Shown here in pieces: positions 8,302 through 48,420 of a stretch of 64,000 nucleotides of DNA. Position numbers and translations under genes: made by a program. The notes beneath the pieces were generated by a model. The model made no database searches. It saw nothing but the letters and a program-made list of their open reading frames with translations, and was not told the origin of the DNA. This DNA is from Dimorphilus gyrociliatus (taxonomy: Eukaryota > Animalia > Annelida): contig CAJFCJ010000001.1 of the NCBI GenBank assembly GCA_904063045.1, forward strand, positions 1,240,001-1,304,000, read 5' to 3'. Position 1 is the first letter of the stretch; each line of letters begins with the position of its first letter.

Positions 8302-11300
8302 TTAAAAATCTTTTTTATTGAGACTTTTCTTAGTTTGTCCTCCCACAGAGAATAACAAGTGCTTACTAGTTAAGAACTTTGATAATAACATAAAAAGGTT
8401 AAGAGCCAGTACCTTTGTCATAACAACAACGTAGTGAGATATACTTGTTCCTATATCTAACCAACTTCCTTCGTCTTTAATCATGAAGAAGAAATGAACT
8501 GCCATGGCATCACTAATGAATAAGATTAATGCAAACAATCCTTTTAGGGGAACTGATAGAGCAACGTGAATAGCATAGACTGCACATGTTGCAGTTAACA
8601 TGGGTAAAACAGTTTTAATGAATATTAGAGGTCCCATAATAAATGGTTTGAGAATTGTTGTAAAACAATAAGTGCTTGTTACATCAAAACTATTTATTGA
8701 AGCTATATTCCCTATTCCAAAAAAGCCTAATGTTACGAATATTAGATAAGCCACTGCTATCCGAATATCCCTTGCTTCCAGATTTCTTGCTGAAATAGAT
8801 GAACGAGAGAAGTGAATCCTCTCGATATTCTTTATCTTTGCCAATTGACATTCAACGTGAATCCACAGGATTAGCAGAAACGAATATATTGCAAAGAATA
8901 TAGCTTCGTACGACGTACTAAGTAACAGAATTAAAGTGAAAAATGATATTATAATACTGAAAAGTCTCTCGTAAAAATTAGTTGACATTATCATAGGAGT
9001 TAAAAGAAGAACTGGAATAGACGTCCAACTATATATTTGATTGAATATCGGCAAGCCTAAATTCTGATTGATGCTCCGAGAAGTAGTGAATACAATATAA
9101 CTTGTGAAAGCTATCATAATAATTTGAAAGATAAATATCTTTCGATCAAGTTTGTTGTTGATCCTTAAAAATGATGTAAGCAATTAGTATTTAGAAGCAA
9201 TGAAAAACAATAAAAATTACCTATTTCTGAAAAGGAAATATAAAATAGCGCTGAGAATAAAGAAAGAGAAGCCCACTCCATATCTGTATAATGTTATGGA
9301 AGGAAAAGCAGGATATTAGTCTTTATTTACTATTTGTTTTGTTTTTATGGTAAAGAATTCTTACACTAAATAATGTTGACTGGAAATTCCAACTACGGGT
9401 AATAAAGGGAATATTGCAACACTTATACACGTAATCGGCCATAGGACTCTTAGTTTTCCATCTAATAGTTGCTTTGCAGGATTATATAATATTGTAAACA
9501 GAGAGATTACAAGCAATTGATAGGTTAATGATGCTCTATTAAAATACGCCCACACCTGAAAGAGTTAATAATACATCAAACAACTATTCATAATATTATG
9601 GAAAAAGTATCATTTTTTACCATTGATTCTATCCATAAAATGCCTATTGTTGCAGTGAGAAAATAAGTAGTTTTATGCATTGAGAGAGAATTGAAAAATA
9701 CGTCCATGTTGATGTTTGTTAAAAGTTCACTTGTAACATTATACCATATAAGTATTGGTAGAATACAATATGTATAATTCATCCAAGGAAGATTTTGAAT
9801 AAAAAGGAGACAAACGGTTATTAGTATCAAAAAACCAGCAAGGATTCTGTTATAAAGCATTAAATTCTTATATTTTTTTGTATAATCGAATTTTTGAGCT
9901 TTTAAATTGGAAAAATTTTTGAGAATAACTATAGAAATATAGCCCAAAAGTCCCAAGAAACTTAACGTTATACAAGCCCTAAAAAATTATATTGTCATTA
10001 AAAATTTGTCTAAAATTTAACAACAAACCATAAGAAAAATCTATCATAATGATGATAATAAAGAAGGCCGTTTAGTGATAATTTTATAAGATCTTTAGAT
10101 AGTTTTATCTAAAAAAGGAATGTTAAAATATACTTGTACTATAAAATTTATATTAATATTTAATATGAATAAACTTACTGTAGTATTATAGTTTCCTGAT
10201 TTAAATGATTCGATAATTCGTCTATGGAAATTCAGTAGTATGGAAGGTGTTAGAAGTCTGATTGTATGGAAATATATCTATATATGTATATTTATGCATA
10301 TACTACGTCTGTATTATTCCTTACTTATATGGTGAAAATAGCATTGAAAATGTAGTTTGCTGTTTTTCTTTCATTTTAACCTGGACATATCGAAATTAGC
10401 AAGGTTTTTGATATCTTAAGTTTTGTTTACTAACTTCAAAGGAGGCGGAGACTTGCTTTGCATTGGCAAATATTGCATCAGCAATATATTTTTCACTTCC
10501 GGACAAGTATTCAACGGGTAACGTTCCCTGATTATGTAAAATATAGGATGAATTTAGAAAAAGAGGAATAGAAAAAGATTTATACTATTACTAACCACAG
10601 AATTAGCTGGGAAATTTACACCTATCAAACCTGCCATAAGGGCAGCCACATCAGCCTACAAAGTTACGGATATAAAAATCAATTTTCGCTTATTGATAAT
10701 ATAAACCTGTTCTACATCCTTTCTAACCAAATTGTCCAAGTTCCATGTACTCTCCTCCACCGATATTTTTCTATTAGACTTTTCGGGACCCTTGACTCCA
10801 GCTCCCCAAGCTACGAGAGGAGTCAGTGTTTCACTTGGATATCCACCTCCGTGAGTTCCTTGGAAATAATACGATAATCTAATTTAACAGATATTCCATT
10901 AGCTTTAAAACTAACCCCAAGCCGTCATTCCATGATCTGCTGTAAATACATAAGCCGTCTTTTTATCATTGTTATAGAATTCCTCAATCCTCTCAACTGA
11001 CTTCTTTATAATGTCGTCAACAACATTTATATTATCTAGATATTGCCTACAAACAAATTATAAGAATAATAATAATTATTAAAGAATATTCAATGATTCT
11101 ATGAATGGAACCTTGAATGAGGTTTATATGCGTGGCCATTTGTGTCTATACCAAGTAAATGAATAAACAGTACGACTTTATCTCTGTTGACGATCTTATT
11201 TAATGTACTATTCGTTGTTGCATTCCTAAGGAATTCCTGTAATGTGTGTTAGTGGATTAGTAAAATTCTTCAAGTGATGGTCAAATTGAATAGAATACTT

Positions 11301-36528: not shown

Positions 36529-37593
36529 ATGAGTGACAAATATTATTCTATATTGATAGAGACTGTCTCCTGGATTATTCCTGGTAAATTCTCTAACGTT
36601 CAAAAGCTTACATGTGGGGCACAAGGAATGTGCTGTACAGCTGATGACGAGACAATAGGGAAAATTGTCATAAAAAAGCTGTTAAAACCTTTTGAAAATG
36701 AAACAAATGCAAAAAGAGCATGGAGAGAAATTGTGATATTACGACATCTGAGTATTTCTCCTCATCCTCATATTATTAATCTATTGGATATCTATACTTC
36801 AGATACATGTCTTTCTTCTTTCAATAATGTTTATCTTATTACTGAATATGGTGGACAAAATTTGAAACAAAGTTTAAAAAATGTGCAATGCTATGATCAG
36901 AGTAGTGCTCTAAAAATCATAGGTCAAGTCGTAAGTGCCTTGGCTTATTTACACTCTGGTGGCATATTACATAGAGATCTCAAGCCTGAAAATATCAGCG
37001 TTAGTGAGAATTTAGAAGTTAAACTGCTCGACTTTGGCTTGTCTAGGACAGCAAGTGATGTAATGTCTGGCTATGTCATTACGAGACCATACAGAGCACC
37101 AGAAGTTATTTGTAGTTGGACTCATTACAAAGCGACTGTTGATATTTGGAGTGCGGGCTGTATACTTGCCGAACTATTATCAGGGAAAATTCTGTTTGCT
37201 GGCAAACACGCGGTAGAACATCTACAAAAGATTATTAACTTTGTTGGAAAGCCTGATGAATCAGTACTCTCCAAGATGACCTCTGCAGATGCTAGAAATT
37301 TTATTGCAAAGCTTCCAAATCCCAGTCCAGTTTCGCTTGAAGCCCATTTTACTGAAGTTCATGAAAGTATTATTGATCTCCTTAGAGTGATGTTAACCTT
37401 TGATCCAGACGAGAGAATTTCAGCAAAGGAGAGTTTACAGCACGAAAGTTTTCGCCTTTTCAGGGCAACGGCATATATATCTTCAAATCCTTTTGGTTGT
37501 CCAATTCTTGATTGCCACTATGATAGAGAAAAAAAGGATTTAGAATCCTGGAAATCATTGGCTTGGAATGAATGTAACAAAATAAATATATAA
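36529..37593 (+). CDS. Divergent, intronless p38-like MAP kinase with SGY activation motif
   Basis: IVIKKLLKPFENETNAKRAWREI, HRDLKPEN, DFGLSRTASDVMSGYVITRPYRAPE, VDIWSAGCILAELL, FDPDERISA. Confidence 0.88.
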   Translation: MSDKYYSILIETVSWIIPGKFSNVQKLTCGAQGMCCTADDETIGKIVIKKLLKPFENETNAKRAWREIVILRHLSISPHPHIINLLDIYTSDTCLSSFNNVYLITEYGGQNLKQSLKNVQCYDQSSALKIIGQVVSALAYLHSGGILHRDLKPENISVSENLEVKLLDFGLSRTASDVMSGYVITRPYRAPEVICSWTHYKATVDIWSAGCILAELLSGKILFAGKHAVEHLQKIINFVGKPDESVLSKMTSADARNFIAKLPNPSPVSLEAHFTEVHESIIDLLRVMLTFDPDERISAKESLQHESFRLFRATAYISSNPFGCPILDCHYDREKKDLESWKSLAWNECNKINI

Positions 37594-38615
37594 AGAATTT
37601 TATAGCTGATTTAACCTAAATTTTTGTTACCCGTAGGTGTATAATTGTTTATTAAAGAATATTTAGTCTTTCGTTTGTGTTTATAATTGTTTACAATATT
37701 AGATTTGTAAGATGATATTCATTATTTCAGAAAAAGAATTCCTTAGGTTTTAATCTTTCGTCAGACAGGGAAGTACCTCATCTCACTATCTCTTAAAAAT
37801 ACTTATTTTAATATTATATACTATTATCTAACATCTAATTGGTACTTTTACCAAATCTAAAATGTATTACAACTACTTATGAATGGTTTTTTAGGAACTG
37901 TTGAAAGAGAGTTTTTGTAATGTTAGTTCACTTATTAGCAAATTTGTTTTGAGCTACTGCTGTTACATTAATCTTTTGAATATTCATATTCATGTCCTTG
38001 GTAAGGTCTATGATAAAAAGATCAAATAAGCTAAATTTGTGATGTATATTTTGCAATTTTCTCGCGAAGAATAAGCAATCAATCTTTCTGCTCAAAAGTG
38101 ACTTTTGATTATTGTTTTATGTATGAATTTTTTAAATTAGCGATATTAAGAATACAGATATTAAAAATTTCATTCATAAAAAGCTTAATTGAATATTTGA
38201 TAAAGTTTTAAATATGATTAACATTTCTTTGTGCTTACATCGTAAACAAAGAAATTATAAACTTCTTCTGTATAAGTTATAAAGCAAATAGTTTTTTATT
38301 TGTAAGTTAAAAATATAGGTTAAACAATTTGTATGCATACTTTTATTCTAGTCGTTTCATTTAAGTAGTGCTGTCTATGAAATTGCACGCATAATTATTA
38401 TTCTTTATTAAATAATGTGTCAAACAATTTTGTACATTTATTTTTAAATCAACTTTTCCAAATCACTCATAAAATAATTATAAGAAACGATTGTAGTGGA
38501 ATTGACAATCAGTATTGAAAATATATCTTTATCTCTTGTAAATGGCTTTTTACTAAAAAATACAGATAACATTATCATCAGGTAAATATTGATTAGTTCT
38601 TATCATGCTTTACTA

Positions 38616-38809
38616 ACCGGTTCCATCAAGACTTTGGGTTGCAACTGGAAAAATGTTGATACTTGTTTACAATTTAGTAATAAACTTATATTAATAAACT
38701 TTTATTAAAAGATTTTAATACACAGAAATGTATTTTCACTTATTTTATTTGTGATAACAGACAATATTTCGAAAGTGTTGCAACCCAAACTGCTTTGTAG
38801 CTAACCGGT
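38616..38809. repeat. Inverted-repeat element (MITE-like candidate)
   Basis: Perfect 13-bp inverted repeat TTTGGGTTGCAAC (38633-38645) / GTTGCAACCCAAA (38777-38789), plus outer ACCGGTT/AACCGGT, around an AT-rich core. Confidence 0.5.
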
Positions 38810-39439
38810 ATGAATTCACCGAGTGAAAATATTTTCAGGCAGATCAGAGTAAAGAATTGCTTGGTGACTGGTAAAAAAAGAATATACTTTTAATAATAAC
38901 TTTTTGTAATGATAAGTATTTTATTTCAGTTAGTTTCAACAATAATTAAATTGGAATATTTATAGTACTAAATTATTTATAAAAAAGAATAATAGAACGA
39001 TTGACTTCATTTAGGTATAAAATATGATTTTTTGTTCACGACTAGATTATCATTTATCCTATAAATATTTTCATACTATTTTTATAACATTATAATTAAA
39101 TATCGTCTTTTTACATCTAAAAATCAATTTATATATGAGAAATTGATGTTTCTTTTGCTATGAGTTTTTATTTTGCTATGAGTTTTATTTTCTTCCAATG
39201 TTCTATAATCTATTTGTATTGGCTATCTATATACTTAGTTTGGATTAAAATAATTTGAACAGTCTTTAAGTCATGGTAGTAAAATAACTCCCATCTACTT
39301 TTCTCTAGAGTAGTTTTATTAGAAATTACGGTTAAAAATTGTCTAGAAAATATTTTATACTCATTCAACTAAGTAAAGTTAACTCATTCAAATTATTTTC
39401 AGGCAAAATAGGATAATTGCATAGCGAAACACAAATGAT

Positions 39440-40724
39440 ATGAGAATAAAAGTACGGGAGAGAAGTAGGCGTTTTTGTTTCAATTGTTTTAGTAGTAAAG
39501 ATCTCCTGTTAAGATTCCGAACACTTGACAACAACACTAAACAGGACTTAAGACTTCTTATTTTTTTATACTTTCTCACATTTTGCGTTATTCTGCCAAT
39601 ACTATGCAAATCGTGGCCTCACTCAATATATTATAGGAAGCCTGATAAACAAATTATTGAGGATCAAGTTAAGAAAGCGAACAATGAACGACATAAAAAT
39701 GCTAAGAACTACTTCCTCAAAACAAATACACGATATCTTAATAAGCTCGACAGAGATTATCTCTATGCCATCGGGATAATTACAATGAGAAGAGAAAAGG
39801 AAGACCCATCTGATGACTATGGTTTTCTTACACAAACTGCAGCTGCAATACACCAGCAAATGAATGACAACATTGCATTCTTCATATGTAATATAGATTT
39901 ACAACCAGAAAAACACACCGAAGTTCAGGCGTTATCTGAATATATTCCAGTTATAACGAGACAACAAAAGAAAGCAGCTGACTCTATTTTTGAGGATGAA
40001 AAGCGAGATTATCAATTTTGCATGTCCGCTGCTTCCCGATTTAATGTTAGTTTCTTATTATTAACAAAAAGGATTAATATTAATTTATCTCTCTCTTTCG
40101 TAGGCTAATTATACAATATTAATGGAAGATGATGTGCTAGTTCGCAAAGACTTTTTAAATATTTTAGGTAATGTGATAAATCGATTCTTCAAACCGGATT
40201 GTCAGGACTCATTCTGCAAAAGTTCAGAAAGTTGGCTTTTCTTAAAATTATTCTATCCTGAAAAATGGAGCGGATATGGAATAGAAATTAAACATATTCT
40301 CGAAAAATGTGGCATATTCTCCGTTTCTATCGGAGTAATTTCCCTAATATGTTATTCTACAAGGAAAAAGGGTTTACACCGATTCACTTTATTTTTAATA
40401 GGCTTATATTTTGTTTTGTTGGCTCATACAATTGGAAGGCAGTATATAAACAATTTACGATCATTTAATTGGCATCTATTAGAAGTAATTCCAGCCAAAG
40501 GATGTTGCACACAGTGTGTTCTATATCCTAAATTTGCAATTGATAGTATTATAAAAAGGTTAAGTTCCATCACTTGTTCAAAAGAATATCCTATTGATAT
40601 TGCTCTCGACCATTTTGCGAAAAATTCTTCTATAAGCGCATGGTTATTGGAGCCAAATTTGTCTCAACATATTGGATATAAATCAAATTTAAAAGCAAGA
40701 AAGGCATTGGAAAATTTTCTTTAG
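39440..40724 (+). CDS. PGAP4: GPI-GalNAc transferase PGAP4 (TMEM246), two exons
   Basis: N-terminal TM, IGIITMRR, FEDEKRDYQFC, MEDDVLV (DxD-like EDD), LKLFYPEKWSGY, two internal TMs, CCTQCVLYP, EPNLSQHIG. Confidence 0.82.
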
Positions 40725-41717
40725 TGAAGAAGATTTCTTTGTAAAGTGATTAATAATTGATGATAAATAAATGTATATAGTGTTCAATAACTGATTGAAT
40801 AATGTTACCAATGAAGATGATGTTTTGTTCTGCATTAATTTCAAGTTCTATAATGTATTTTACAATGTAATTTGGGTTACTATTTCCATCTACAAAGAGC
40901 AATAACTTTATATATGCTTTGGATAACCAAAGAAACATCTTATTAATATCAGTACACCAGTGTCTTTATCGGTAGTACTCGTTTGATCAGTTGCACATCT
41001 AGGTGTATTTTGGTGTAAACATCTCTTGAATAGGCTCATTAACGTGCATGAATTACCATTTATTATTGCCATATCTGTTATATATATGAAGGTCTAACTA
41101 AATGTATGTGCATATAGATAAAAGCCCTTTTTGACATGGAGTTAGTCTACTCAATGAGGATTTTTGTAACAATTTCTAAATGGGTTCATTAACAAATCAG
41201 AATATCTGATATTTTAGCCATATTTTAGCAGTTTGAAAAAAAAAATGCATAATTAATGATAATCCATTTACTATTAGTTTACCAGGTCTCATTTATACTT
41301 GACAAGGAATCTGTTAACTTCATTGTAACAGTAAGCTGTTACAATATGAAATCATAGAAATGACATAACATGTAAATATCCGGCGCTTTGCTATTGTTAC
41401 AATTCTCCTTTCGTCATTAGCTCTCGCGACACGATTAAACACACTTGGTAGACGAGATGGATTGTTTGCTCAAATAGACCTATGGAACAAATTCCATGTT
41501 GTATAGGTCAATAGGTAATGTATACTTGTTTGTTACTTATTTTTGTACAGCTTGTACCATAAATAAAGTATCTTTACTTGCAATAAAAACTTCGCACATT
41601 ATTTATTTATATCAAATTCACTTTAATGAAATTTATGTAAATAAATATTAAATTAATTTGTTAAAAGTAATTAAGTAATGTCACTTTTAAAGTATTTTAA
41701 AGTGGGACAAAGTAACA

Positions 41718-41748
41718 CGCATGCGCTAATAGTTTCATAACACTTCCG
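41718..41748. promoter_or_regulatory. NRF1-like (CGCATGCGC) and ETS-like (CACTTCCG) promoter sites
   Basis: Consensus matches 65-95 bp upstream of the ATG at 41813. Confidence 0.5.
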
Positions 41749-41812
41749 CTTCCTCGTGATTTCTGAAGATTTGTATCTTTGTGGAGTTTCCTTGATCAAT
41801 CTCACCGCCAAT

Positions 41813-44800
41813 ATGAAAGCAAAACGTAATAATTCTACATTTAATTTTGCCTTTAACAATACAGATTTTTCTAACATTTTATTTTTTTAAATTAGATAAA
41901 GAATACCATTTAAAAACTTTAGACAAAGATTTTTCTGATTGGGTACAAGTTATGTCTATACTATTAAAAACGGATAAAAGTCCCAATATGGAGAAGTTTG
42001 AAACTTGGTTCCATTCAAACTGGAGTGTAGAGTATATAAAAGTTGTTCAAAACTCAATAATCGTTGACCATTTTAAGTAATAACTCTGTTTTTCTTGAGC
42101 AATTGTCAATTAAAAGTTATTATAAACAGCTCCATCGTTGACGAATTCAAAAAAGACACCTCACAAAGTCAGATTAGATATGAACCTCTCTTTACAATAT
42201 ATCAAAGGGAGGTTCTGGCAGAATCCCTTTGTCAATGGGGAATTTCAACAAGGGATAAGTGCAATATCCTTAACTTTGACGAAACGCTTGGTATTAAACT
42301 TTGTTGAAATTATAAGTGAAAATTTATTTTATTATAAACTATGTTGACAATTAAAGGCGACGAAGAACAAGGCATTCAACTGTTCAACAACTTGGCAACA
42401 ATTCTAAGGATGGTTCCAGGCCCTGAATATTATATCATAATCTCTAAGGTTGATTTGTACATTTGGTTGATTCGTAACGTTTATATTTCAAAATTGTAAA
42501 TATCAGGTTGCTAGTCGGAATAGAGACTGTCTGGTAGATGAATCAGATATTTCAAAACCATTATCAACTGATTATGATCATCGCGTCTTCGAAAAGAAGC
42601 AAAAGTTTAATATTAAAGACTCGTTGGTTTTTGTGTACGATTTTGAACAAAAATCAACTAGACAAACCAACAGCTGGCCTCGACAAATTCTCCCTACGCA
42701 TTTGGTTAAAGTGTCTAGGAAAGGATATATACCCATCTCTGTCCCATATGAGGAGCCACCAAACTCTGACAAAATTGAACAAGCTCACTTGAATAGTATT
42801 CCACCTAACCTTTCGGAAAATAAATATTTTAACTTTCATGATTACAAGGAAAGTCAAAAAAGATTTCAGGAGCAAGATGTGAAAGCAAATCAAAATTCAA
42901 TGACGTTTAAAGAAATAGCAAAATGCCTCCAAGACATTCCAGAAGGAGATGAGATCAAATCCCTTAAAGAAAATGTCGAGCAACAATCACCTCAATCGAA
43001 TTCTGACTTGGATTTGGATTCTGATTCGAATTTAGATTCAGACTCTGATTGTATCTTCATCGAGCATGAGGCTCCTAGAAGTGCTACGAGTTTTTATTCT
43101 TACAATGATTGGAGAAGTGGTGGTGAAGATTTAAACAATGAAAATTGCCAAAGCACAGAATTTTACAATAAAAACTTCGATAGTTCTAACAAAAGCGAAG
43201 GTAATAGCCATAATAATAGAGGAAATGAAAACATAACTAACAATGAAAATAAGGGTAATCAAAATACTAATAATGTAAATTGTAACAATGCAGAGAATTC
43301 AAGTAATCAATGTATACACGATATCAAAAATCAAAATATGGCAAATGTAAAAGTCCAACGTAATGAAGCTGATGATTTCTACATTGAAAATTCGAATACG
43401 GAAGAATTAAACAATCACATCATAGAAAATCTAAATGTTACAAATACAAATGGAAGACACAATGAAAGGACAGACACACCTAATTTCTCGTACAAAGAAA
43501 AAGGTAACGATTCTAACAATAAACATATAAATACAAGTAAAACTCCAAATTTAAATATACAAGATCAAGAACAAGAATTGAACGAAACCGTTTCAAGAAG
43601 TACAACTGATAAAAACTTTAATCATATCAAGCAAGGAGATAAGGATAAATCAATAAATAGTACGAAATTAATAGCAAATAAAGAAACAAGCATTTGGGCA
43701 TCATCAAATTTTCTAAATAGTTTCGATATTGAAAAGCTTTCAAAGAGCAATCTTATAAAAAGGAATCAAAACTCCTCACCAGACTGCATACAGTTGAGCG
43801 ATTCTGATAGCGACACAAATGAACCTGAAAAGGAGAAAACACAATCACATAGTTCATCGAAAAAAACGGATTGTTTTGGTAAGAGACTATGGACTGAAAC
43901 CGCGAAACTATTTAAAGATACTAGTAAGTTGTTTTTGATAATACATGTGTTATAGAATAAATAACATGCTTAAATGTTTATTAATTCCCCTTAGAGCAAC
44001 CAAAACAAGGAATTGTTAATAATAGACCCCTGGAAGATTACGATAGCCTTGTTAAACAACACGATAAATCTCGTGTTCTCATTCAGCCAGTGATTGTTCA
44101 AAATACAAGCAGAATTGAAATTTATTTGAAAGCTTTTCTCATTGGTGAAGGCAAGTCGATTTGTGATATTCCTGGTCCAGAAATACTTGAACCTAAGAAA
44201 ATTGAATTTGATGAGAACACTTGTTTGGAAGCTCTCGACTGGTTCGATGGACAAAAACCATCATCAACATCGCTTAAAGCACTTTGTTTACACCCTGACG
44301 ATATAGAAAAGTTATGTATATTCGACGAAAACAGCGAAATGTTTAGTGAGAAAGCTTTTTCTTACAAATACTATTGAATCATTTTATATTCATTCATTCC
44401 TTAAAATAGATAAACAGGGTCAACAAACGCATAAAAGTGGGCTTGGAAAGGATTGGAATAATGCGGTTATTGATTTAACTGATTGTCATTCAGACGATGA
44501 CAGCAAAGTGCCTCATTTGCCACAGGAAAAGCCAAAAAAAAAATCAAATTTAAAGAGAAAGTTTAGAGAAAGTGAAGAATCTGGAAATTCTGATTCCTCA
44601 AAGAATAATGAAAAACCCAGAAAAAGGGTAAAATTTCTATTAGCAGAAAAACCGATTGCAGAGAAAGCTAGTTATAATAGCTGTATTAACGAAATGAAAT
44701 CAAAAGTAAACTATAATAGAAGATAGCATAAAATATTTAATTAATAATAATTTTACTTTCTAGCAGAAAGGAAATGAATTTTATTCGTTGGAATTAACGA

Positions 44801-45734
44801 GATATTTAGATGTATGTAGTGAATTTAATTTGAAAACGCTTGTTAATGATTAACAATTATCAATCAAACTACAGAGTATTGTTGAAAAAATTGCGCAATA
44901 TGAGGAAACGATGAAGAACTTCCCGAATAGAGTAGGTAAAAGAACATACGAAATTGTTATGAGCATCCTGAAATTGGACAAAAGAGCTATAGAAGTATGA
45001 CAATAATTAGTTTATTAGTTTATTTTAAAGACATGCTTATTTCTTATATTTTTGCCTATAGCTTCAGATTTTCAATTATGAAAATTGCGTTAAAAGCGAA
45101 GTTGATTTCTATTGTAGGCTATCTGAGAAAGTATTATTAGCTGGAGAAAGGTTAAGGTGTTATACGTTCGATAAAAAGTATCTACTATTTGGACATTCTC
45201 CTATTCCAAAAGATATGAGGTTATACTTAGAAAATATCTGCAGTTTAATGGAAATGGCTCATTCAAATTCCGATGTGGCTAAGTTCAAAGAACTCACTCA
45301 TAAAAGGAATTCAATTCTTAGTAGATATTGCGATGAAACTTTAGAAATTGATAAAATTATTCAGAAGGTCGACGAAGAACTGGACTATTTCAAGTAAATA
45401 CAATTTTCTTAAGTTTTTATCTGTTAGTTTGTTTTAATTATTATTTTTACCTTCGACTAGAGAACTGCAAGAAAAATTATCGATTGTGAAAAGGAATTCA
45501 AGTCTGAATAGGTTACTTTCAATAAATAGAACTATTTCAATGAATAGAGAGAAGTTAATTATAAGAAATTTAAAATGGATTGAACATTTGAAGAAAACAT
45601 TTACGGAAGTTCAACCAGTAATATATTATAAATTTAAATTAATACTATCCTCTTTTCGTCTATATTTCTTAATTATGCTAATCTTATTTAATAATTTATT
45701 GTTTATCCAACAGAGAATAAAAAGCTTTCGATAA
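41813..45734 (+). CDS. DUF3715 (TASOR/TEX15-type pseudo-PARP) domain protein with long low-complexity linker and helical C-terminus
   Basis: Exons 41813-41825, 41896-42076, 42130-42290, 42357-42448 and 42507 onward join in phase. They give KVVQNSIIVDHFNSIVDEFKKD..LAESLCQWGISTRDK..LGDEEQGIQLF..YIIISKV..KPLSTDYDHRV..SLVFVYDFE..WPRQILPTHLVKV. Later exons at about 43995, 44410, 44764, 45062, 45461 and 45714 are modelled with lower certainty. Confidence 0.72.
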
Positions 45735-45887
45735 CAAGATAACTTTTCATTCAATAGAAAATTTTGGATGGAATATGAGATGTCTCAGGTCATTTACATT
45801 TTTATCAACAAATATTATTGCACAACAATATATTTGAATTTATATTTATAACAGTAACAGTGAGTATTTCCCATTAGAAGTTAATTT

Positions 45888-48420
45888 TTAACGAAACTTG
45901 TGTTGGCGGCTAGTAGATCGAAATTCAACTTCATCTTCATTTTCATCTTCCTCTTCCTCATAATTATACTTGTTACTACCGCCTCTACCTTGTCTAGAAC
46001 TTTGTATTTTTGTGCTATTTTTTTTATAACTATTTGTAGTATTCAAAGAATGTGATTCCAATTCTTCTCCTGGCTTTGGTAAAGAGAAAAGAAGTTTCTT
46101 CATTTTATTTGTAGTTTTAATATGGTTCCTATCATCCTCTGATAGGGCGCCCAAAAGATTCTTAAAGAATTTCAAAAGACGCTCGGAAATGCCATCCTTA
46201 ATTGAAATGGAAAAATTGGTTGCTCTTGGCCGAAAATCGGTTGAAGTTGACGACATAGTTGAGTCACAATTTACAATATTTCTTTGAGTGAGGCATGAGA
46301 GAAACTTTTCAATTAAATTTAAAGTATCGCTTTCGTTTAAAGGGCCTAAGGCGCTTAAGAAACGAAATAGATAAACTACTGTTGCGGTACTACACTGAAA
46401 ATAAAAGACAGTTTTTAAAAATTATACTACAAAAAGCTTATACATACCGAATCGAGCGAAGCCAAACCTTCGTATGGATGGTCGTATAATAACAACATCT
46501 TTTGAAAGTCTTGTGCCCTAAGAACAGGATCCTAAAACGGAAAGCAAATATGTTTCAACTACATTTTGAACTTTGTAAAATTAAACTACTAACGTGTAAT
46601 TCTTCTATCCAATCCCATAATAATTTTGCTAATACAACTGCATTTTCCTCTTTTCCAAGTGTTTTCCAGATATTTATTTCAGCATTTAATTTTTGCTTAA
46701 GCTCTTCTACTCTCTTATGCACGTAGCCGTCATAGTCGTCTAACTCCAATGCTTCAATAACTTGTAAGGATATGCTCTCTTGCGCAGCTTCATCATCGTT
46801 ATCATTATTTTCAGATCCTATGCTCGACGAGTCCTGATGTTTTGAGTAGTACTTGTCGAGTTCTGTGATTAAATGCCAATAAACCCCAATTAGTATGTTA
46901 ATAAAACAAACTTGTCTCGTAAAATTCTGTTTTACTTTCAGTTTTTTTCCCTTTCCACCTTTTACCGTCTTTCACAAATCGATCTCTTTTATCGGCTTGT
47001 CTCTGATAATTTATAAGAAAAAAAAATCTTGATAAATCAATAATGTCAACACAATAATATCAAAAAATATCAATTAAACAGGTCAAACCATTGCTGGGTT
47101 GTAGTCTCTATCCATTTCTTTATTTAATGTCAATAATCTTTCGCATATTATGTAAACAATTTTTGGTAGATACTTAAATGTTCTAAATTGCTGACCATGC
47201 AACAAGTATCTTTGTCGAACAATATACTGAGAAAGATTGAACGGCGGTGCCTCGTTACCGTCACAATCATTTCTAAACAATAGAAAGATTAATTATTAGT
47301 CAATTAATTTTGTTACTGCGTTTTATTAACTTACTGAAGTGAATAAACTATTTTAAAAGGTCGAATATATTGTTGAAATTCTTGAATAAACTTAACTTGG
47401 TATACAGTCTGAATGGAGCCAGGTCGCTTAGATCTTACAAGATGAATAGCTTCTTCAGCTGTCATTCTATTAGCATAGATAAAATAACAGGCTATCAAAA
47501 CGCCTGTTCTACCACTTCCAGCATGACAATGTACTGCAACAGCTCCCTCCGATATGGAATATTGCATAACTTTAACAGTATCTAACACTCCACTTGTTGT
47601 ACCGACACCGTAATCTCTCCAACCAAAATTATAAAAAAAAACTGGAATACAAAAAAGATAACTCAAGATTTGATAAAAAGTTAATTGAAAAAAACAACAC
47701 GTACTTTTCTTTTTCATAAAATCTTCCGGTTTGTATGAAAATCCTTCTACTTCTAATTTATTTAATCCGCAGGCGGGATGTTCCCCAGGTAATTGTAAAT
47801 TTATTATAGATTTAATATTCTTTCTATAAAGAGGCATACGAAAATAAATCTGTGTGTGAATAATAAATTTTTTTATAAATACTGTTCAAATTGTCCGATA
47901 ATATCATATCGTTCAACTAGAGTTGTGCTTGGTCTTGAAATTGCTATTATCTTGTCAGTAATCCTAATTTCGCAAAAGATTTGTTATAGTTTATTCATAT
48001 TTGGAAAAAATATAGAAAAATTAAAACAATTGACACGTACCAACTAGAAAATAAACCTTTTATTTGCATATGTTCTTCGGAAAATTTTCCACTAGCGGGA
48101 GCATTGCAGTATTTGCATTTTTCACCACCACATCCTATCGAGCATGCATACGATTCTGGAATGGCATGTCTCATTTTCTGGAACAGAACCCCGTATTTAG
48201 CCGTTGGAGTTGAACCTATATTAAAATTTTAATGTTACACAAATATTAATTACTGATAATTATTTAATGCTACATTTGTTAATATATTAAGACCTTTTTG
48301 GTATTCTGTATTTTTTGCAGTCTCTTCAATATCAATATCATTGTCCTCATATTCCGTTAGAGATACTCTCCTATCAATAGCTCTTTCTCTTGTATCTTTT
48401 TTATTATTTCTAGACGTCAT
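45888..48420 (-). CDS. PTPDC1: Protein tyrosine phosphatase domain-containing 1
   Basis: [47 protein letters not shown], intact CX5[22 protein letters not shown]. Confidence 0.93.

Follow-up and report, generated by a model that had tools for sequence, protein, structure and literature searches.

A PARP-like fold without its catalytic residues predicted at the N terminus of DgyrCDS322, a lineage-restricted protein of the annelid Dimorphilus gyrociliatus

We analyzed DgyrCDS322, a gene of the annelid Dimorphilus gyrociliatus that lies on the plus strand of a 64,000-nucleotide stretch of DNA (assembly GCA_904063045.1, contig CAJFCJ010000001.1, positions 1,240,001 to 1,304,000; here called the window, whose own numbering is used throughout). 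The explanation of the whole that we consider reasonably probable is that of an expressed gene whose product opens with a pseudo-PARP domain and serves as a non-catalytic nuclear scaffold, probably linked to SUMO. What is new here is the recognition of a predicted PARP fold in a protein that had no annotation, is restricted to one lineage, and has a layout not described before.

RESULTS

DgyrCDS322 is a spliced and expressed gene

The window is AT-rich (∼31% GC), with short introns. In the initial annotation, a continuous N-terminal domain had been assembled by removing four in-phase introns (41826-41895, 42077-42129, 42291-42356, and 42449-42506). Read directly, each of the four has GT and AG at its two ends and preserves the reading frame, and the proposed structure recurs exactly in a public transcript contig, in the public protein model, and in the exon lengths and phases of an orthologue on L001, a 43-kb Logan contig of a related species. 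With large exon 5 as the query, an exhaustive search by HMMER through 1.84 billion representative proteins gave a 100% identical match to residues 150-621 of the public D. gyrociliatus protein DgyrCDS322 (994 aa, here P0001). The first 240 residues of this protein hold all of the blocks noted in the initial annotation in the same order; it has no precomputed Pfam domain, and DgyrCDS322 is the sole name given in the source records. When a 3779-nt Logan contig from public run X1 is placed on the gene, it shows 13 GT..AG joints, of which the first four coincide with the proposed introns. Because a contig that skips 13 introns represents a spliced transcript, DgyrCDS322 is expressed. It is a real, spliced gene with 12 coding exons on the plus strand at 41813-45734.

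The transcript and the public model differ at several joints. By arithmetic on exon lengths, the coding sequence of the transcript is 3033 nt, or 1010 aa, versus the 994 aa of the public model. Within exon 5, the transcript removes two in-frame GT/AG introns, 43201-43293 (93 nt) and 43504-43563 (60 nt), both of which P0001 keeps as coding, and alternative retention of the two may therefore occur. We note that these introns, which lie in the Asn-rich linker, are multiples of three in length and leave the frame intact whether spliced or retained. In exon 6, the transcript uses the donor at 44345 and the public model picks an earlier one (44315-44345 region); the longer exon end (F..E.S..F) is kept in the L001 orthologue. 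At the acceptor of exon 8, the public model joins 3 nt upstream of the transcript, at a NAGNAG pair (44763/44766). Finally, the public model stops early, at 45397, whereas the transcript adds 3′ exons at 45461-45617 and 45714-45734, with the stop codon at 45732-45734. The extra transcript exons were examined singly, and whole-protein searches used P0001.

The N-terminal domain is predicted to be a catalytically dead PARP-like module

According to its ESM Atlas model, residues 1 to ∼220 of DgyrCDS322 most likely form a PARP/ADP-ribosyltransferase fold. The model of residues 1-225 aligned to clusters of PARP10, PARP12, ZAP, and plant SRO2 with template modeling (TM) scores of 0.62-0.66 over 174-196 residues, and every one of the rows listed from the 30 nearest models belonged to the PARP or SRO (inactive-PARP) family. 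The Atlas language-model features scored 0.93 to clusters of PF00644, the PARP catalytic-domain family, on a scale where 4-10% of shuffled proteins score 0.9. The PARP-like fold that had been proposed for this domain thus finds support in the Atlas model. The domain is encoded by the following exons:

41813-41825, plus strand: coding exon 1, 13 nt, with the ATG at 41813 (transcript joint 41825>41896; P0001; 13-nt exon 1 at L001 9224-9236).
41896-42076, plus strand: coding exon 2, residues 5-65, the N-terminal and presumably helical part of the PARP-like domain (P0001 and transcript; 47% ungapped identity to L001 9303-9479).
42130-42290, plus strand: coding exon 3, with the first PARP core motif and T87 at 42194-42196 (P0001, transcript, and orthologue comparison).
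42357-42448, plus strand: coding exon 4, with the GIQLF motif, identical in the orthologue, and Q126 at 42377-42379 (P0001 and transcript).
42507-42713, plus strand: start of exon 5, which encodes the final 69 residues of the domain, with L189 at 42624-42626 (65% identity to the orthologue).
42636-42686, plus strand: the 17-residue stretch Y193-Q209 before the final strand ILPTHLVKV (motif-based reading).

Table 1 of PMC7955679 served as the reference for placing the catalytic positions, which were assigned from the order of the motifs. The H-Y-E positions correspond to T87, Q126, and L189 in D. gyrociliatus and to A, Q, and L in the orthologue. The canonical H-Y-[EILY] triad does not fit, as both His and Tyr are absent from DgyrCDS322. 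The absence of the catalytic His, reported in the initial annotation, is thus borne out, and Tyr and Glu are missing as well. By these residues, the domain is predicted to be a catalytically dead PARP-like module, or pseudo-PARP, and since the triad positions are degenerate in both species, catalysis was presumably lost before the two split. A degenerate triad is common to other pseudo-PARPs and so is not specific to DUF3715; the triads reported for the DUF3715 proteins are L-Y-Q in TASOR, L-Y-S in TEX15, and V-T-E in TASOR2 (PMC7955679).

The family of the domain is evenly balanced between readings

The initial annotation had assigned the domain to DUF3715, with a significant DUF3715 match named beforehand as the deciding observation. 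In hmmscan searches of Pfam-A, whose HMMER filters drop very weak matches, PF12509 (DUF3715) gave no match at E≤10 for whole P0001, for its residues 1-240, or for single exons. The PF12509 model is itself reported to lack ∼50 N-terminal residues of the domain (PMC7955679). Canonical PARP (PF00644) likewise went unmatched at E≤10, whether the query was the full protein, the domain, or a single exon, and the resemblance to this family is confined to fold and language-model features. The weak Pfam matches that did appear (SduA_N, Ubiquitin_UBP8, IDEAL, and SpoIVA_C) were set aside as chance, as they differ between the two orthologues. Searches of the complete PDB sequence set at E≤10 (phmmer and profile hmmsearch), with the domain, a two-species profile, and two segments as queries, recovered no TASOR or PARP chain from a set that should include the TASOR pseudo-PARP 6TL1, and gave chance matches, e.g., to methionine aminopeptidase and lyssavirus phosphoprotein. 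With PF00644 excluded, PF12509 became the best named Atlas family at 0.75, a score below the tool's own noise level and to be taken as a lead only.

The collinear TEX15/TASOR blocks on which the DUF3715 assignment had been built are all present in order in P0001. However, they do not separate DUF3715 from canonical PARPs, because the pattern that they largely follow is shared by both. One feature that may point toward DUF3715 is the region before the last strand, where 17 residues (Y193-Q209) separate VFVY from ILPTHLVKV in both species, a spacing taken from the sequence with the strands assigned by motif. On this sequence-based placement, F195 falls at the place of TASOR Y305, and Pro-Arg stands just before the last strand. 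Douse et al. (PMC7532188) counted 14 residues in the TASOR loop that joins the final two strands, against 5 in every human PARP, and reported Tyr305 of this loop to be essential. Because of this long insertion, we lean slightly toward a very diverged DUF3715 (RDTS) domain, though the PF12509 profile fails to recognize it; overall, we judge the chances that the domain belongs to the DUF3715 clade to be roughly even.

The gene is conserved in synteny and evolves faster than its neighbors

In the exhaustive search with exon 5, the sole relative other than P0001 was P0002, a 420-aa open reading frame (ORF) that represents a fragment of the orthologue and sits on L001, which is syntenic with the window. 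Gene order is common to window positions 36529-48000 and L001 4100-14850 and comprises an intronless MAPK gene (75% identity), two ORFs of ∼200 aa (66%), DgyrCDS322, a small gene on the minus strand (60%), and a dual-specificity phosphatase exon, also on the minus strand (86%). The first four exons of the L001 orthologue (13, 181, 161, and 92 nt) have the same lengths and phases as those of D. gyrociliatus. Conservation figures were computed exon by exon without gaps, as some exon fragments had their ends wrongly placed in the MAFFT alignment. The PARP-like domain is 48% identical and 73% similar to the orthologue over 211 ungapped aa, with a saturated proportion of synonymous differences (pS) of 0.87 and a nonsynonymous divergence (dN) of 0.40. 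Since the neighbors are 60-86% identical between the species versus 48% here, DgyrCDS322 evolves faster than they do; the sequence comparison indicates that its domains are under constraint despite this fast evolution. Identity to the orthologue drops from ∼0.6 to ∼0.2 just past residue 222, which places the predicted domain boundary there, and the Atlas structural alignments stop at residues 222-239.

Word-seeded searches with residues 1-240 and residues 622-994 and an alignment search with the exon-6 block returned only P0001 itself or ORFs of L001. By sequence search, relatives are known only in these two species, and the gene appears to be lineage restricted.

The rest of the protein has a layout of its own

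Downstream of the domain, the initial annotation had described an N/S-rich linker of about 400 aa, a short block, and a helical C terminus. These parts were found as a linker of 399 aa, a block of ∼105 aa, and a conserved tail whose helicity is presumed:

42714-43923, plus strand: rest of exon 5, the Asn/Ser-rich and poorly conserved linker with two optional introns and two SUMO-interaction-like motifs (composition, orthologue alignment, and transcript joints).
43035-43064 and 43785-43814, plus strand: the SUMO-interaction-like motifs of the linker, conserved in the orthologue.
43995-44345, plus strand: exon 6, a conserved orphan block of ∼105 aa (48-49% identity to L001 11306-11620).
44410-44705, plus strand: exon 7, with AVIDLT and an acidic run at 44463-44501 and basic clusters at 44529-44567 and 44613-44636 (transcript joints and orthologue conservation).
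44767-45734, plus strand: exons 8-12 at 44767-44811, 44875-44994, 45062-45393, 45461-45617, and 45714-45734, stop included (transcript joints).

The linker is 16% Asn and 12% Ser, and the sequence past residue 222 shows little conservation and low complexity. Three conserved motifs, each with a hydrophobic core beside an acidic or Ser run, occur at residues 326-335, 576-585, and 747-759, the third being AVIDLT with an acidic run behind it. All three resemble PIAS- or MCAF1-type SUMO-interaction motifs, with the AVIDLT motif and its acidic run presumably PIAS-like. In exon 7, the WN..IDLT motif, the acidic run, and one basic cluster are kept in the orthologue, and the basic clusters look like putative nuclear localization signals. 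Exons 8-12 encode a conserved Lys/Glu/Leu-rich C-terminal region, 38-48% identical to the orthologue, which we presume from its residue pattern to be helical.

The ∼105-aa block of exon 6 gave only inconsistent weak Pfam matches, and no relative beyond L001 emerged in word-seeded or alignment searches. In Pfam searches, no SPOC or PIN_TASOR match was found in either species, a result that does not extend to DomI, which is not known to have a Pfam model. TEX15-family profiles also matched nothing in P0001, in its residues 600-994, or in the exons of both species taken singly. Because SPOC, PIN_TASOR, and TEX15 profiles are unmatched after the domain, the predicted layout is neither TASOR-like (DUF3715-SPOC-DomI per PMC10578480) nor TEX15-like, and the TEX15-like architecture of the initial annotation found no support. 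The order of pseudo-PARP, linker with SUMO-interaction-like motifs, orphan block, and tail appears to match no described family.

Two motifs upstream of the gene are conserved

Upstream of the start codon, two short elements are conserved in the orthologue at L001 ∼9127-9136 and 9154-9168:

41717-41726, plus strand: ACGCATGCGC, a palindrome and candidate promoter element ∼90 nt upstream of the ATG, identical upstream of the orthologue.
41744-41758, plus strand: TTCCGCTTCCTCGTG, a tandem ETS-like TTCC motif and candidate promoter or 5′ untranslated region (5′UTR) element, with 14 of 15 bases identical in the orthologue.

The palindrome ACGCATGCGC was found once in the 64-kb window versus 0.05 expected. 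It resembles an NRF1 site, and the tandem TTCC element an ETS promoter site. The X1 contig runs 255 nt further upstream, across an apparent 178-nt GT-AG intron (∼41515-41692) in the 5′UTR. If this intron is real, both conserved motifs fall inside the second exon; the extension could instead be read-through from the upstream gene.

DISCUSSION

Taken together, these data suggest that DgyrCDS322 encodes a non-catalytic protein built on a PARP fold. With all three catalytic positions replaced, the fold would make no ADP-ribose and the domain would act as a binding module, a reading that the loss of the triad in the orthologue also supports. The long disordered Asn/Ser-rich linker, together with the putative SUMO-interaction motifs and putative nuclear localization signals, would make the protein a nuclear scaffold, and this non-enzymatic scaffold would probably operate in SUMO-linked chromatin or RNA regulation. 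The data show the gene structure, its expression, its conservation, and the loss of the catalytic residues, whereas the fold is supported by a predicted model, and nuclear location, SUMO binding, and the scaffold role are each suggested by sequence features.

Several observations weigh against this explanation. Support for the fold comes from one ESMFold-type model only, in a protein with an overall predicted local distance difference test (pLDDT) score of 0.43, and the top Atlas feature matches share 136-150 of 256 features, where true family members typically share 170. AlphaFold2 gave no usable model, with pLDDT values of 36.8 for the single sequence and 34.0 for a five-row alignment of orthologue exons, and a Foldseek search of the PDB and an Atlas shape search, both made with this low-pLDDT AlphaFold2 model, returned only noise. 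No sequence method (Pfam, or HMMER searches of the PDB that used single sequences, a profile, or segments) ties the domain to any PARP-fold family; the strands and loop of the domain were assigned by motif rather than structure, and the case for SUMO binding and nuclear location is made from patterns.

A TASOR- or TEX15-like silencing role is possible and, at this stage, putative. In its full form, DgyrCDS322 would be a true DUF3715/RDTS protein that is recruited to nascent transposon RNA via a HUSH-like or Piwi-linked complex and directs heterochromatin formation, which we consider unlikely. It would fit the place of the pseudo-PARP at the very N terminus of a long protein that is mostly disordered and carries nuclear-type motifs, the faster evolution of the gene than of its neighbors (48% versus 60-86% identity), and the emergence of PF12509 as the best named Atlas family once PF00644 is excluded. 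DUF3715 proteins are found across metazoa (PMC10578480), and the extended stretch ahead of the last strand, with F195 where TASOR has Y305 and Pro-Arg just before the strand, points the same way (PMC7532188). However, PF12509 has no match at E≤10 and an Atlas score of only 0.75, below noise, no TASOR or PARP chain was matched in the PDB, and no SPOC, PIN, or TEX15 domain match was obtained. In addition, Tyr217, which according to Douse et al. is the only residue of the catalytic site to be conserved in TASOR and is Tyr in TEX15 and not in TASOR2, is Gln here. The species also argues against such a role, as D. gyrociliatus has hardly any transposons, no DNMT3, and only 0.16% 5-methylcytosine (5mC) (PMC11292947); on these grounds, a TEX15-type role in DNA methylation is excluded. 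A more specific version, in which DgyrCDS322 is a fast-evolving, dinophilid-restricted DUF3715/RDTS descendant that lost SPOC/DomI, acquired SUMO-interaction motifs, and takes part in the RNA-directed silencing of heterochromatin, seems to us improbable.

Alternatively, the domain could be an independent dead offshoot of canonical PARPs (PF00644; PARP10/12/14/ZAP type), unrelated to DUF3715 and serving, for example, to bind RNA or proteins during stress or antiviral responses, comparable to ZAP/PARP13 or plant RCD1/SRO, an explanation to which we assign a low probability. The Atlas speaks for it, since the nearest clusters, whether ranked on features (0.93) or on structure (TM 0.62-0.66), are all PF00644 or SRO and none of the nearest matches listed carries PF12509, and the last strand, ...QILPTHLV, may resemble the C terminus of human PARP10. 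Nevertheless, the Atlas ranking is biased toward short single-domain clusters over long DUF3715 proteins, PF00644 gave no match at E≤10, no PARP chain was matched in the PDB, and the spacing before the last strand is 17 residues versus 5 in all human PARPs (PMC7532188). It would be more surprising still if there were no PARP fold at all and the domain were an orphan, lineage-specific one whose Atlas matches are artifacts of a low-confidence language-model structure, which we regard as very improbable. AlphaFold2 could not fold the domain, no library gives sequence-level support, and shuffled proteins reach an Atlas score of 0.9 in 4-10% of cases; yet a poor model is unlikely to converge on one fold across ten PARP/SRO clusters with 174-196 aligned residues, and the three core motifs are ordered and spaced in a way that, together with the boundary at residue 222, fits a PARP domain.

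Pseudo-PARP domains such as those of TASOR, TEX15, ZAP, and RCD1 are coming to be seen as a class of non-catalytic modules in genome defense, and naming the predicted dead PARP fold in DgyrCDS322 is a useful annotation. If the domain is a DUF3715 descendant, it would offer a compact example that is open to experiment, in an animal that has no DNA methylation and hardly any transposons, and could separate the chromatin role of the module from its DNA-methylation role. If the silencing reading holds, the RDTS module would work without DNA methylation and might bear on the freedom of this genome from transposons. An independent dead PARP would be one more lineage-specific pseudoenzyme, of modest interest.

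Comparison with known pseudo-PARP systems

The suggestion of an undescribed nuclear silencing system in this lineage, made in the initial annotation, was overstated as a novelty among invertebrates. TASOR-like DUF3715 proteins are reported throughout metazoa, with TEX15 itself reported as vertebrate specific (PMC10578480), and DUF3715-only proteins, called truncated Tex15 homologues, occur in 21 of 28 cnidarians (bioRxiv 10.64898/2026.09.07.749791); as invertebrate DUF3715 proteins are already published, an invertebrate pseudo-PARP is not new in kind. Like the cnidarian proteins, DgyrCDS322 is an invertebrate protein with a pseudo-PARP-type domain and no vertebrate partner domains. Theirs are caught by DUF3715 profiles, however, whereas DgyrCDS322 is not, and the likeness is drawn from their published description.

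With TASOR (DUF3715/RDTS, 6TL1), DgyrCDS322 would share the N-terminal position and a PARP fold without a working H-Y-E triad, as well as, by sequence spacing, an extended stretch ahead of the last strand (17 residues here versus 14), the aromatic residue two positions after the strand, and the Pro-Arg before the next. It differs in being unrecognized by PF12509 or PDB HMMER and in having Gln for TASOR Tyr217; in the Pfam search, SPOC and PIN are absent after its domain, and DomI and DomII do not appear to follow it either. TEX15, a vertebrate factor of the PIWI-interacting RNA (piRNA) pathway, has in common with it a pseudo-PARP at the N terminus of a long, largely disordered protein, but DgyrCDS322 is without TEX15 domains, and the output of TEX15, piRNA-directed DNA methylation, is impossible without DNMT3 or 5mC (PMC11292947). 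ZAP/PARP13 and plant RCD1/SRO carry WWE, zinc-finger, or RST domains and have Pfam matches of their own (PF00644 in ZAP; WWE and RST in SRO), unlike DgyrCDS322, which has none of these; yet they offer the parallel of a dead PARP fold used as a binding module, and ZAP and SRO2 are the nearest structural neighbors of the predicted domain in the Atlas.

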